The position numbers were made by a program, and so were the translations under genes. DNA of 36,080 bases, taken from contig NW_021824654.1 of assembly GCF_006345805.1 (NCBI RefSeq), positions 1-36,080 of the forward strand, written 5' to 3'. This DNA is from Octopus sinensis. Lineage: Eukaryota. Shown piece by piece: positions 17,991-26,000 of the stretch (position 1 is its first letter; every line of letters begins with the position of its first letter). Below the pieces are notes generated by a model that saw nothing but the letters and a program-made list of their open reading frames with translations, was not told the origin of the DNA and ran no database searches.

Positions 17991-20047
17991 AGTTCAACAT
18001 CACTGACGACTATCAGCTGTCGGTTTATTATCTTACTTTCTTAATATCACATGCAACGTAGGAACGAGCTAAATTTGACCTGATAGTACGACCTGTCTGA
18101 AGGTAACACTGACTAATCACTATGATTATTAGATAGAACGTTATCTATATCTGTAAAACTGTCCTTGGACGAAAATTACATGCACGTTATCTATATCTGT
18201 AAAACTGTCCTTTGACGAAAATTGTAAGCACATTTTGCTTTGACGGTTAATGGCGGCCAAACCGAGGCAAGGATCGAGCTGAAAATTGGCAGGGATACTA
18301 AATGAGGATGAGACCTGGGATGGTTAACATTCGCAAGCTATAAAGATGTGGTTGCTATAGCAAAAAGATTGATTTTTTTATCGATTCAAGGGGGCCCAGA
18401 GCCCCTCTAGGTTTGTGCGATTGGCTTTTAATGCCCAATGGCATGCACTGCAGGCTGTTGTCCTCAATAAACATACATCTTGTCGCGAAATTCCGGCAAC
18501 TAGGAAACGATTTTTCATTGTGAATAAACGAGTGCTTTTTACCCTCATTTTCTTTTTAATCTTTTTATAAAAGTGAAAAGATTTCGTCTAATTATTTCTG
18601 CAGTCCACTTACGATGGTGATTCAGTTGACTAGGAAAACTATAATGAAGAATATCCAATACCAAACTATCTTAATCTACATATTGAAACTGCATTAAACT
18701 TTAGCAAGCTTACCTTTACCTATTCTGAGTTACTTGAACGGCGATGTTCCCTTCCCTCTCTTCTGATTATGGATACCTTTTTTTTTTACCTTTGATACCG
18801 TTGTTTCACTTTAAGGATACTTCTTTACCCAGCCATTATGATATTTCGACTGCTGTCCACTGTTTCAAATAGGCTTTAGCATTGTCATTCAGGCCTTTCT
18901 TAAACACTCACATATGATTCGTCCCAAAGAATCAACCTTTAAATAAGAGTTTTTCTTCCACTAGCGAACGCTATACATGTCTTTCAGGAAGCCCCGTACC
19001 AATTTAACTTTATGCAGCATTCGCTGTTAGTTTATGTGCACGATATGTGGGAAGATAGAATAAAGGGGGTTTTTAATTAGCTTATCTCTCCGAAAAAATA
19101 GCTCCCTTTGCTGTTGAAAAAAATAAACTCGCAGAGGGAAAGTTTCAACATCTTCAATTTCCTTACATCATTTATGTGGATGTTTCTGACAAGAAATTTC
19201 GCTTTCATGTAAAATATTTTGTAGTCATTATCCGTAATCTACTCCCAAAACACTTCAGTAGCTCTACTTTACATCGCTTGCAAACTTATATGTTCTAGGA
19301 TAATCGAAGTGCAACGACCTCCACAATAACCAGCCTTCAATTTGATTTTCCATTCCTAGGTTAATCGGAAGCAATTTGCCATGCTACACATAAACCTTCC
19401 CGGTAGTTCAATTATTTGGTGAAAAAATACCACGAAAGCATCTTAAACCGTTTAAAGGACAGGTGCGTTTGCTAGTTTACTATAAATTATAAATGTTTTA
19501 TTGGGAATTACGAGACGGATGTTCCATTATGGTATTATGGTGTTGTAAATAAATGTGGTTGGTGTATTTGGAAAATCAATAGACTAGGGCATAGCTAGTC
19601 AACAAAGGAACTTCTGTGTGGTTGGTCGACCTTCAAGAAATGACAGCTACAACTTCTGCAAGTCACTCAGATACTTCTTTTTCAGAAGAGGAAAGGCACT
19701 TTGGATAATGTCCTCCGAATCACTCTGTCCAAAAAGCAAAGCAAAAGAAAACAATATCCAAAGCAGATGGGATAATTAAGACTTAAAAAGCTTTTAACCA
19801 TAGGTCTGCTCGAACAGGCACAACCTTGAAGCAAACCAGAAACAAATCATATACTACCAGTTTAATGTAAGAAAGACGCGGGGGGAATGTAACCCCTGTG
19901 GCTTCCTGCTTCTTCGATTAAATTGAAAGAAAAGGAGACAAACAATGGGCGCAGTGGGAAGAACTTGTATGATATGTTTGTTGTATCACAACTGATCTAA
20001 ACATTGAATATTATCATCGTAATAATTTCATAATAGTTATTCATAGC

Positions 20048-20053
20048 TTTATT
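20048..20053 (-). terminator. Candidate poly(A) signal AATAAA for exon 8b
   Basis: tttatt on + strand, ~400 nt downstream of the 8b stop, in a 3' UTR homologous to that of 8a. Confidence 0.5.
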
Positions 20054-20455
20054 TTCGTTGAATTGTACAAAGGAGTATACCGCAATTAGCAAAATAGAGA
20101 AAGCCCTACATCGAGGAAATTACAATATCAAAGTTTTAAAGGAAAAGGTAAACATGACCACCACCATATTGCTCGAAGTTTTGTCTATTTCTAATCTCTA
20201 TATATCACGATGCATACCTACAGATAGTGCTCATGATATATCAGTCTAGGTATATAACCATGTGTGTCAATTTAATAAACTCTATGGAGGAATACTAAAG
20301 AAAGGAAACATAGACAAATACAATAATTCACGATCGTTGAACTGTCAGTATTCTGCGAAGAAATAGGACCTCTGCTTTCAAAGAGATGTATTTTCAGTTA
20401 TATCTAGTATACCATAAATAGGTACGCTAAAACACACATATATGACTGATGTATA

Positions 20456-20634
20456 TCACAATCCTGTTACACGGATATTATCATTCACTGGAACATAAGT
20501 GATGCCTGGTTGCTTGCCTTCTAATTTCATTGGTGCTTTTATAGGTTTTTCCAACTGAAATATCTGTAAGGTTTTTGTAAAAGTGATGAAAGCTTCCGTA
20601 TTAACCAGTGTCACTCCTGCACACATTCTTGGAC
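20456..20634 (-). CDS. Duplicated terminal exon 8b (candidate alternative last exon): (G)PRMCAGVTLVNTEAFITFTKTLQIFQLEKPIKAPMKLEGKQPGITYVPVNDNIRVTGL*
   Basis: Same 179-nt length, phase, acceptor (tgctttatttgtag|) and stop position as 8a; 35/59 aa identical; no second exon 7 lies between 8a and 8b. Usage is unproven. Confidence 0.7.
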
Positions 20635-22552: not shown

Positions 22553-22558
22553 TTTATT
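22553..22558 (-). terminator. Candidate poly(A) signal AATAAA for exon 8a
   Basis: tttatt on + strand, ~340 nt downstream of the 8a stop; at the homologous position to the 8b signal. Confidence 0.5.
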
Positions 22559-22899
22559 TGCGTAAATTATACGAAGGAGTATACAGGAATTAGCAACATA
22601 AAGAAAAGTGTAACTCAAGGAAATTACGAAGGGAAAGGAAGACATTATGACCACCATATTTCTCGAAAGTTTGTCTATTTCTGTTCTCTATATATCATGG
22701 TACATATCCGCAGATATTCCTTTTGATATACCAGCATACATATATTACCATGTGTGTCTATCTAATAATATTGTTGGAGAACTACTATGAGTGAAAGCAT
22801 AGAGAAATACTATAATTTACTATCGCGGATCTGCCAGTATTCTACGAAGAAAATTTTCCCCTACTTTCCAAAAGATATCTTCTCGCTATCCAAATTATA

Positions 22900-23078
22900 T
22901 CACAATGGTATTGCACGGATATCATCATTTGTTGGGACATAAACGAGGCCAGACATGTTGCCCTCTACCGTCATTGGTGTTTCGTAAGGTTTTTCCAACT
23001 GAAATTTCTGTAAGATGTTTGTAAAAGCCAGGAAAGCTTCCGTATTGGCTAATGACATTCCTGAACACATTCTTGGAC
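22900..23078 (-). CDS. P450 gene A terminal exon 8a: (G)[58 protein letters not shown]
   Basis: 179 nt; tttatttgtag| acceptor; heme-ligating Cys in GPRMCSG; TGA at 22902-22900. Confidence 0.95.
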
Positions 23079-26000
23079 CTACAAATAAAGCAGTAGTTAT
23101 AAATTAAACAACACACACTATGTATGCTAAATATGTATCATATACAAGTGATAAAAATTAGATAAGTCGTCATTGATTTTAGTTAGGTGTGAATATGTTC
23201 TGGCTGTTATCTCCTACACCCTTTATATAGTCGAACAGACTTCCAGTCATAGACACACACGCCCTGACAATAGTCAGATGTTAAAAATGGATTTCCAGAA
23301 ACTACAACCATCCTGAAGGTACCCCGTGTATTCAAGCACACGGGATTGCCTTCAAGATGACTGTTAATATAAAGGGAGGTAAATGTTTCCCATAGCGCGA
23401 AGTTATAAATTTGAAATTGAAATCGAGGAATCAAGTAATTTTATTAAAAATATGTTATTAAATGAATAAGATAAACAAATCGAGGCTTGCTCACAGAAAT
23501 AAGGATATATCTCGGGAGAAAAAATGACCAAATATTTGTTTAGAGAATAAATATTCTATGTAGCGTATTTAGTGGACCATTGATGCTTATTTTGTTGAAG
23601 TGATGAATATCAATACGCACTTAAATAAGATTTGAAGTAGATTGCTGTTTTATAGTGTCTCATTTTTACTAATGTCAAACCAACTCTGGTGATTCTACAA
23701 TTCAATAATTAAATCTCCCCTTAACATACAGTTTTAAAACAATCATTAGATAGTCTAGCTGTAGATCGAGGCAAATGTTGTGTTGGTCACGATTGGGAAC
23801 CGTTTTATTATAGATATACTAAATCATTAGAATCTATTTACAATACTTACCCGAACCGAAAGGTAAAAAAGCCTCATTTTTCTTTAACTCATTATTTTCA
23901 TCAATCCATCTTTCAGGACGGAATTCCTCTGGTTTATCCCAATAGTTCGGATCAGAATGAGCTTCCAATATTAAGAATGAAACGAGAGTACCTTTTGGAA
24001 TATCATAACCTTGAAGAGTTGTTTGGACTTCAGCGGTGTGTGGAATAGTTACAGAAGCTGCAAAAAAGAATCTTTGTAAATATTAACAGAGCCCAAATTA
24101 ACGATAATCTAAATTAAATATGTTACTATGGATATCATAATAACTTTGATGTAATTATTCTGTGACACCTTTATAGGCATTAATTAATATGGAGTTGTAT
24201 TGAAACAGAAATTTCGTTCCGTAACACTGTTGCTGTAAAATTGGGTATTAAATTAGTCTGTGTCGCAACGTTAGAGATCTGAGCTTATGTAACACTGGAT
24301 TGACGAAATGTTGTAATGTAACAATACAGATTAGAACTGAAAGAGAATTGATCATGTCAGGAGGAGTTGACTTTCAGGGATGGTATAACCAACAAAGTTT
24401 GAGATTATATTACAAAAGTGCTTACTAACAATAAAAACAATGTAAAGCACAAGGAAAGTATGCCATTAACACAGGGATATAAACGTTTTGGGGCGAATAT
24501 CATTGGCGTACTGATTCAAGTTATACATGAATAACAGGAGATATCGTTGTATTATGAAAATTGCATGACGGCCTTCTTACCAATTGTCCCAATTCTGTGA
24601 ACCTCAAAAAGAGTTGCTGCAACGTATGTCATATGTGGTTTGTCTTCCATTGTAACAGGTCTGGTCTGATTGGTGATCTGAAATAGATAAGCATTCACAA
24701 AAGACTTAATTCATAATACATACATACATACATACATACATACATACATACATACATACATATGTACGTGCGTACATACATACATACATACATACATACA
24801 TACATACATACATACATACGTACGTACGTGCGCACATATATATCTCTTTGAAAATCGAAGTAAAAGAGAATATCTATGGACAACTGCTTCGAAATTTCCA
24901 GCTTCTGTATCCAGACTATGAATTCATATTCATACTAATAATACTTGGAGCACTAAGTTTTGTTAAAGGAGAATGTGGATAAACAGGGATTTTCAGAGAG
25001 AGAAATCGACCAGCTAATTCGTACATTACAAGTGGAATCTGTAAGTGGAACTGTAAAAATATGCAACACTTTTCTCAAGTTCCAAATGTGAATTTGTCTA
25101 TGTTAACTACATCCCAAAGATGGAAACTTGTCTCTTTATTGACATAACCCCCCCTACAACCGTTAACAAAGTTACCATTATTGTATCATGTGATATACGA
25201 AAACTCTATACCACGATCCCGCACCAATATGGACTGGAGGGAATAAGTTTCTGGCTAGAAAAATTCCATCATGAAATCCCAGACAGAAGTGAAAATTAAA
25301 ATTCATCCATAAAAACAACGTTTTTGAGTTTAATGACAATATTTATGAACAAATATCTGGGACAGCTATGGGGGCAAAAGTCGCCCCAATGCAAATCTAG
25401 TCATGGTATACATGGAGTTCCAGATATATGAACAATGTAAATTAAAATACGGCTTGGATTTCCATAAATATTTACTAGAAAACTAGAAACGCTACTTATA
25501 TGACTGCCTAATTTTGTGGACGCCCACATTTGACCAACTTACTGATTTCAAAATCCAAATTAACACCATAAACAGTAGTATCAATTTCAGAAATAGTAGA
25601 TTTTATCTTAGTTTCTTTTGCATATTTGCTTTTATACTTACGTTCGGCAGTGCTGTACAAAATTTTGTGATATTTGGACATTTATTTATTAATGAAAACA
25701 AACACAATTTTTGCTTGTTATCTGTTGACGAAATAAAATCATGGCCTCCATGACGTCAACACATACACACATACAGAATACACACACATGTCATGAATGT
25801 CATGACGTGTCAACCAACATAAACAGACGCCCGCTATCTGTGACATATCCACACACATAGTTTTCGCGCTCTCTAAGAAAGTTTTAATAATTTAGAAATA
25901 TTTTTAACTGAATGCTGTTTCAAAAATGTAAGTTGTTTGTACAATAAGTGTTTATATTTTAGCTTTCATTAAACAGACAATATTTTAATGTGTTTTTTAA

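Follow-up and report, generated by a model that had tools for sequence, protein, structure and literature searches.

Does a cytochrome P450 (P450) gene in an octopus tandem array end in two alternative ways, and where would its second ending have come from? The stretch of DNA analysed here (the window) is 36,080 bp long; it is a complete unplaced scaffold of Octopus sinensis and part of a tandem array of CYP2-like P450 genes, and all gene and exon coordinates are given on its minus strand. Exon 7 of one gene in the window, gene A, is followed by two terminal exons, 8a and 8b. The initial annotation had proposed that this locus may encode two enzymes with the same N-terminus and two different ends, each carrying a Cys pocket and substrate-recognition site 6 (SRS6). 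Based on comparison with Octopus bimaculoides, where our reference locus (L002) holds two complete neighbouring genes termed X and Y, we believe, with a probability of about 0.72, that 8b is the stranded terminal exon of paralogue X. It would be a young captured exon, usable but drifting and unconstrained, and so a minor option for a Y-type gene rather than a maintained second enzyme. The features around the two exons are listed below.

24057-23851, minus strand: exon 7 of the Y-type P450 gene A, ending in FLPFGS + G at a phase-1 donor, GG/GTAAGT, with GTAAGT at 23850
23439-23079, minus strand: 3' end of intron 7 in gene Y, whose orthologue is the upstream part of L002 30184-31851 in O. bimaculoides
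23078-22900, minus strand: exon 8a, the annotated last exon, with the GPRMCSG heme Cys pocket, the L-helix, SRS6 and the stop
22899-22553, minus strand: 3' untranslated region (UTR) of 8a, with AATAAA at 22558-22553
22552-21779, minus strand: flank 3' of gene Y; its collinearity with O. bimaculoides extends to L002 31851, and it ends in a (TGTA)n microsatellite
21778-21099, minus strand: amplification junction, made up of (TGTA)n, an element resembling a short interspersed nuclear element (SINE) and an AT-rich satellite with a 12-nucleotide (nt) period
21109-20635, minus strand: 3' end of intron 7 in paralogue X, with L002 5755-6198 as its orthologue (8.3% mismatch, 2 gap openings); it includes the acceptor TGCTTTATTTGTAG
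20634-20456, minus strand: exon 8b, GPRMCAG...VTGL*, intact, its phase matching that of the exon 7 donor
20455-20048, minus strand: 3' UTR of 8b, with AATAAA at 20053-20048, homologous to the 8a signal, and ATTAAA at 20276-20271
20047-15239, minus strand: former X-Y intergenic spacer, collinear with L002 6780-10000 except for a 1.3-kb segment at 19476-18147
15238-14872, minus strand: exon 1 of gene B, the next array unit and a second copy downstream of gene A

The two exons are closely matched. Each is 179 nt long, is in phase with the donor at 23851, reads GPRMC...L* with the heme Cys in the same place, and stops at its own codon 60; between them 139 of 179 nt (77.7%) and 36 of 60 amino acids are identical, with no gaps. 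The 14-nt acceptor TGCTTTATTTGTAG is found exactly twice in the window, ending at 23079 and at 20635. Beyond the exons, the stretch 20048-21072 aligns with 22552-23304 in five collinear pieces of 75-79% identity, which take in the homologous AATAAA signals, and the last ~230 nt of the gene Y intron 7 tail are paralogous to the stretch 5' of 8b. Since the offset between the pieces drifts from 2232 to 2504 nt, the flanks of the block carry indels (among them two of 45 nt and 14 nt in the 3' UTR and a (GT)n-rich surplus of ~210 nt 5' of 8b), while the exons have neither an indel nor an internal stop. By tblastn, no second exon 7 lies between 8a and 8b, and no X exon lies there either. The duplicated block is real and far above chance, and in all of this anatomy, from the repeated intron tail, last exon and 3' UTR to the single exon 7, the initial annotation was borne out.

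The layout is that of alternative last exons, with one donor common to both, two acceptors (23079 and 20635), two stops (22900 and 20456) and two AATAAA signals. It is not that of mutually exclusive internal exons of the CYP4F3 type, as 8a and 8b each bring a stop, a 3' UTR and a polyadenylation (poly(A)) signal, and neither has a downstream partner exon within the gene.

Given that only an intron tail, an exon and a 3' UTR are repeated within the window, with no second exon 7, the block might be taken to have arisen inside gene Y, by local duplication of its last exon together with the adjoining sequence, which is the origin that the initial annotation had implied. O. bimaculoides speaks against this. 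At L002, the two complete genes lie head to tail: X (XP_014772151.1, 497 amino acids) has its last exon at L002 6199-6377, and Y (XP_014772154.1, 498 amino acids), 3.6 kb downstream of X, has exon 1 at L002 10001 and its last exon at 30536-30714. Window 21109-19476, comprising 8b with 475 nt upstream and its 3' flank, matches L002 5755-7309 at 87.5%, and the match runs on collinearly via the X-Y spacer into Y exon 1 (window 15849-14784 corresponds to L002 9399-10463). Window 23439-21779, comprising 8a and its flanks, matches L002 30184-31851 at 84.9%, whereas the cross matches (the 8a region against the X exon 8 region and the reverse) reach only 70-74%. At the peptide level, identity is 78% between 8b and X exon 8, 59% between 8b and Y exon 8, and 75% between 8a and Y exon 8. 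Since each region matches its own counterpart so much better than the other, 8b is the orthologue of X exon 8 and 8a that of Y exon 8.

Judged by this orthology, the 8a/8b split is the old X/Y gene duplication, older than the speciation of O. bimaculoides, and the repeated block is X/Y paralogy truncated upstream by a rearrangement breakpoint. A local duplication inside Y is refuted by the same comparison, and we give it next to no credence: the 8b block is collinear with X and only ~73% identical to the Y exon 8 region, the split predates O. bimaculoides speciation, and the repeat ends upstream just where the amplification breakpoint lies. No 8b-like exon was found within 10 kb downstream of O. 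bimaculoides Y. In its origin, then, 8b is the terminal exon of a partial, downstream, same-strand paralogue, as in exon capture of the type known from human CYP3A7.1L. Gene conversion between 8a and 8b was also considered, and no sign of it was found; the 8a-like N, I and T in the 8b copy of unit 1 of Octopus vulgaris are also present in X exon 8 of O. bimaculoides, and so are ancestral.

We propose that the ancestral locus resembled that of O. bimaculoides, with a complete X (8b-type end) followed by a complete Y (8a-type end). A segment that begins midway through X intron 7 and ends ~1.1 kb beyond the stop of Y would then have been amplified in tandem in the O. sinensis/O. vulgaris lineage. 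The amplified unit would consist of the X intron-7 tail, X exon 8, the spacer and Y. Between any two units there would thus remain, on the same strand and ~2.3 kb past the 8a of the unit before, the end of X intron 7 with X exon 8 and its 3' UTR. In the window, a novel junction at ~21779-21109 joins the Y downstream flank (L002 31851, in (TGTA)n) to X intron 7 (L002 5755), and nothing that corresponds to the junction sequence is present at the two ancestral breakpoints in O. bimaculoides. On such a model, 8b is expected between units and should be missing after the last unit, and both hold. In the gap-free loci of O. vulgaris, 8b follows three successive units (L001 16659, L001 45302 and L006 4564), and in O. 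sinensis it lies between units at L003, at L004 and in the window. No 8b was found within 10 kb after the terminal O. vulgaris unit (P0132), nor near the inverted O. vulgaris copy (P0013) or its O. sinensis counterpart (P0135); these terminal and inverted units still carry intact 498-codon genes.

The junction is rich in repeats. A SINE-like element of ~210 nt is present in two window copies (21553-21764 and 15888-16075), the first of which sits exactly at the amplification junction and is adjoined by the AT-rich satellite (21560-21099, ~460 nt, period ~12 nt). No repeat common to both ancestral breakpoints that could have mediated the amplification was found, the Y side lying in (TGTA)n and the X side, in O. 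bimaculoides, having nothing comparable. Related SINE-like copies are also present at other sites in the loci of O. vulgaris and O. bimaculoides.

An assembly artefact was considered as a source of the 8a/8b layout and rejected, as the layout is seen in three O. sinensis contigs and, in an independent assembly without gaps, in three O. vulgaris units. The window begins and ends in copies of the same sequence, so that the scaffold, with a tandem period of ~34 kb, covers slightly more than one array unit. Further units lie on at least three unplaced O. sinensis scaffolds, the window included, and the array is thus collapsed or broken in the O. sinensis assembly.

What would a gene A transcript gain from 8b? 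The intron phase and acceptor common to X and Y would make the orphan exon a ready alternative terminal exon: a transcript passing the 8a acceptor and poly(A) site could join the donor at 23851 to 20634 and so encode a chimera, Y(1-438)/X(439-498), in which the FxxGxRxCxG heme loop is intact and the L-helix and SRS6 are different. The Pfam p450 profile (PF00067, cut-off 22.8 bits) matches the 8a product (P0131) with 395 bits over positions 1-456 of 462 and the 8b product (P0133) with 383 bits over positions 1-455, and the closest PDB relatives are CYP2B4 and CYP2B6 (E = 1e-95). The heme signature is present as FGSGPRMC(S/A)G across the exon 7/8 junction, is intact with 8a or 8b, and has its Cys aligned with Cys436 of CYP2B4. 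The other P450 motifs are found upstream, LAGTDTT (I-helix) in exon 5, EVHR (K-helix ExxR) in exon 6 and PERW (PERF-type) in exon 7. By profile and signature the predicted protein is a CYP2-like clan P450 with either end.

The 24 amino acid differences between 8a and 8b lie right after the Cys, in the L-helix (one version of which is AFITFTKTLQIF) and in the C-terminal beta region. The residues aligned with V477/G478 of CYP2B4 are L/V in 8a and I/T in 8b; CYP2B positions 477 and 478 are SRS6 determinants of substrate specificity, and a change of specificity through the 8b swap is plausible. The family-consensus EGKQxGITYVPVNDNIR is retained in 8b and has been lost from 8a.

Is 8b, then, a maintained and regulated alternative terminal exon that yields two enzymes through the choice of last exon and poly(A) site? 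The clustering of substitutions at the two SRS6 positions, the consensus kept in 8b, the full set of signals in the window copy (acceptor, frame, stop and AATAAA) and the RefSeq isoform pairs at two sister loci, described below, would favour such an exon. We surveyed six 8b copies (three from O. sinensis and three from O. vulgaris) and nine 8a copies, scoring the acceptor AG, the frame and AATAAA. The 8b copies are as follows.

8b, window: AG intact; frame intact; AATAAA intact
8b, O. sinensis chromosome: AG intact; frame intact; AATAAA in an assembly gap and not assessable
8b, O. sinensis 42.8-kb scaffold: AG intact; frame intact; AATAAA lost via a 1-nt deletion (AATA-AG)
8b, O. vulgaris unit 1: AG intact; frame intact; AATATA
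8b, O. vulgaris unit 2: AG to AT; frame intact; AATATA
8b, O. vulgaris unit 3: AG intact; 1-nt deletion with premature stop; AATAAA intact

A frameshift is thus present in one of the six copies, the acceptor AG is lost in one and the homologous AATAAA in three, through four independent lesions (AG to AT, the 1-nt deletion, AATAAA to AATATA and AATAAA to AATA-AG). By contrast, all nine O. sinensis and O. vulgaris copies of 8a are intact on all three features, with a canonical AATAAA or ATTAAA 341-353 nt past the stop. The initial annotation had looked to a conserved 8a/8b pair in relatives, and no such pattern emerged: O. bimaculoides lacks the pair, every O. vulgaris 8b copy is lesioned, and two kinds of unit, terminal and inverted, do without 8b and yet have intact genes. 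It had also held that an 8b joined to exon 7 by no reads in any tissue, and missing or disrupted in close relatives, would be an orphan remnant of a partial duplication; the second half of this describes, in part, what was seen in O. bimaculoides, the O. vulgaris copies and the units without 8b.

The absence of indels and stops from 8b, which the initial annotation had offered in support of its use, proved to carry little weight. The divergence between 8b and O. bimaculoides X exon 8 is 9.5%, and that of 8b's own flanks is 7.6-8.3%; between O. sinensis and O. bimaculoides, flank divergence is 6.6-11.4% and gap openings number 0.008 per nt. Computed from flank divergence, the probability that a neutral 179-nt exon keeps its frame and stop over one lineage is ~0.3-0.4. 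Given so short an orphan period, the intact frame is uninformative on use, and because 8a and 8b diverged mostly as the ends of two complete genes, the intactness of 8b is not evidence of use in gene A. We therefore regard a maintained second terminal exon as unlikely. A narrower version, in which O. sinensis makes regulated (for example, tissue-specific) use of the X-derived heme-proximal/SRS6 module at each Y copy and the O. vulgaris lesions reflect lineage-specific loss, seems to us distinctly improbable.

The ratio of nonsynonymous to synonymous substitution rates (dN/dS) was tried as a test of 8b function and set aside as non-discriminating, since the clearly maintained 8a and Y frames are also near 1: the values are 0.92 between 8a and 8b, 1.0-1.3 between 8a and Y exon 8, 1.5-2.2 between 8b and X exon 8, and 0.85-0.93 over exons 1-7 of Y. 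As a separate observation, dN/dS for the whole of gene Y (O. sinensis and O. vulgaris against O. bimaculoides) is ~0.85-0.93, with coding divergence at about the intron level, and at least five Y copies nevertheless keep intact 498-codon frames. The pattern suggests that diversifying and purifying selection act side by side in an array of xenobiotic-type P450s that is being amplified.

The two-isoform idea is already present in public annotation at two sister loci. On the O. sinensis chromosome, RefSeq gives XP_029643129.1 (X1, 498 amino acids, 8a end) and XP_036363005.1 (X2, 498 amino acids, 8b end), which share their first 438 amino acids, and the annotated end of the gene falls exactly on the 8b stop. 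On the 42.8-kb O. sinensis scaffold there is a second pair, XP_029657054.2 (X1) and XP_036355839.1 (X2), both of 359 amino acids. The X2 isoforms were found by listing the members of 90%-identity protein clusters; a search with the chimeric exon 7 + 8b peptide had returned only 8a-type or paralogous cluster representatives, the X2 isoforms being hidden inside clusters. No transcript-derived (Logan) proteins for the gene, with either end, were found in the protein collection searched, a result that is uninformative on the use of 8b. Since the chromosomal copy and the window are 99.1% identical over 15.8 kb, the window represents either an allele of that copy or a unit sister to it. Codon 22 of 8b is ACC in the window and ATC in the other copies, and GAT at codon 53 is confined to the chromosomal copy. 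The chromosome has a 100-N gap (L003 35520-35619) 186 nt past the 8b stop. Thus, the claim of two enzymes with a common N-terminus of ~438 amino acids and two Cys-pocket/SRS6 ends stands as anatomy and as annotation, in the form of X1 and X2, and falls as regards the implied origin, the second end being the exon of paralogue X.

Might 8b instead be a dead remnant that is never spliced, with the X2 isoforms as annotation artefacts? It began as an orphan exon, every O. vulgaris 8b copy has a lesion, and the 8a acceptor, with the same final 14 nt, is proximal and transcribed first. The RefSeq model for the window itself, XP_036354371.1 ("cytochrome P450 2J6-like, partial", 375 amino acids; P0011), is identical to our exon 2-8a model and has no 8b, and no 8b use was found among the retrieved O. 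vulgaris gene models. Against this stand the intact splice and poly(A) signals of the window copy, the assignment of X2 models to two separate loci in the RefSeq re-annotation and the lack of a frame-breaking lesion in any O. sinensis copy. We consider a wholly dead 8b unlikely. One O. vulgaris model, CAI9729728 (203 amino acids; L001 10001-43402, OX597824.1), combines exon 5 of one unit with exons 6-8a of the next over ~29 kb; it reflects either inter-unit read-through splicing or a mapping artefact among paralogous units and, if real, hints at read-through transcription across the spacer.

We therefore return to 8b as a stranded X exon that Y-type genes could use on occasion. We infer that it is a minor, recently gained and unconstrained option because the proximal 8a, with the same acceptor, is met first and because lesions are found in 8b copies only. 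Several points weigh against this interpretation. All three O. sinensis copies of 8b keep their open reading frame and acceptor AG, and the window copy is intact on every feature scored. In principle, 8b could share the selection regime of 8a and Y, as dN/dS is blind to the difference between drift and diversifying selection. The RefSeq X2 models might stem solely from alignment of the O. bimaculoides X protein, which, aligned here, would naturally pick Y exons 1-7 plus 8b, so that X2 models could be artefacts of cross-species protein alignment; this bears equally on the case for a maintained exon. Finally, the apparent first unit on the O. sinensis chromosome (L003 1-7065, CM016869.1) has no X exon 8 upstream of Y exon 1 and carries instead a frameshifted X-like exon 2 (L003 2444-2699) and an exon-3-like piece, so the history needs at least one deletion or rearrangement beyond simple tandem duplication. 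The 1.3-kb segment at window 19476-18147 is in all other array units and is absent from O. bimaculoides, and it and the first-unit difference break at the same ancestral point (L002 ~7309), beside a short direct repeat, aattttcgtccaa....

Splicing to the exons of a neighbour is not new among P450s. Finta and Zaphiropoulos are said to have written in 2000 of "gene evolution by capture of downstream exons" and of intergenic splicing in tandem P450 clusters. The CYP3A7.1L transcript reportedly includes a second pseudogene exon as well, whereas the octopus 8b would be a one-for-one swap of a single exon, in a layout repeated along an amplified array. PMC9305658 cites Rodriguez-Antona et al. (2005, J Biol Chem 280:28324) for human CYP3A7.1L, in which splicing links CYP3A7 to exons of CYP3AP1, a pseudogene that lies downstream. 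This is the closest precedent for 8b: both involve a tandem P450 cluster and a downstream paralogue remnant on the same strand, in both a terminal exon of the remnant can replace the gene's own last exon to give a new C-terminus, and in both usability depends on the splice-site state of the given copy or allele. The difference is that splicing and enzyme were shown experimentally for CYP3A7.1L, whereas the octopus case is known from database models. In the literature searched, human CYP3A7/CYP3AP1 was the only P450 precedent found, and nothing relevant was found on octopus CYP2 arrays or on an 8a/8b isoform pair.

Two further systems offer partial parallels. In CYP4F3, both exons lie within the gene, are flanked by an acceptor and a donor of their own and affect N-terminal substrate-recognition regions. 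In contrast, 8a and 8b are terminal, have their own poly(A) sites and encode the Cys pocket, L-helix and SRS6, and the mechanism would be last-exon choice. What the two have in common is one P450 gene that would give two enzymes differing in one homologous, duplicated exon for substrate recognition, as CYP4F3A and CYP4F3B do through mutually exclusive exons (PMC12784423). In PMC12564374, CYP2C18-CYP2C19 is given as an example of read-through and intergenic splicing in a tandem P450 cluster, and the octopus array may resemble it in transcription that runs past the poly(A) site of one paralogue into the next (compare O. vulgaris CAI9729728). Such read-through chimeras, however, combine exons from two genes that are both complete, and most are rare and non-productive, whereas 8b is an orphan without a gene that would give a full-length, in-frame P450.

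If 8b is used, it would be a clean and datable example of a partial tandem duplication turning a stranded exon into an alternative terminal exon, and of a chimeric P450 with a new substrate-recognition end being made without a new gene. Should regulated use prove true, the array would encode about twice as many distinct P450 active sites as genes. There is also a caution for annotation, in that X1/X2 isoforms in amplified P450 arrays may reflect the orphan exons of neighbouring paralogues, and in that the intact frame of an orphan exon says little when the orphan period is short. Beyond the exon pair, array-wide dN/dS near 1 with many intact 498-codon frames may interest specialists in P450 evolution.

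The remainder of gene A lies upstream of exon 7, with exon 1 outside the scaffold end. The exons present are listed here; the translation of each matches XP_036354371.1.

36017-35792, minus strand: exon 2 of gene A, intact
32903-32777, minus strand: exon 3 of gene A, intact
30791-30635, minus strand: exon 4 of gene A, intact
28245-28109, minus strand: exon 5 of gene A, intact
24677-24581, minus strand: exon 6 of gene A, intact

Exon 2 of gene B (window 1565-1800, minus strand) has four indels relative to exon 2 of gene A (-2, -1, -1 and +2) and stops in all frames, so that gene B is a pseudogene, at least in this assembly. Fragments of a mariner/Mos1-like transposase lie at two places in the window: a weak Transposase_1 match, below the Pfam cut-off, in the spacer upstream of gene B (window 15560-16480, minus strand), and HTH_48 (E = 6e-18) in intron 3 of gene A (window 31440-32270, minus strand). 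Intron 1 of gene B (window 10333-13082, minus strand) contains a long open reading frame of a retrotransposon without long terminal repeats (non-LTR), with RVT_1 (E = 2e-32) followed by zf-RVT, and this frame is preceded by a long poly-purine tract coding for Lys and Glu at ~13260-13050.

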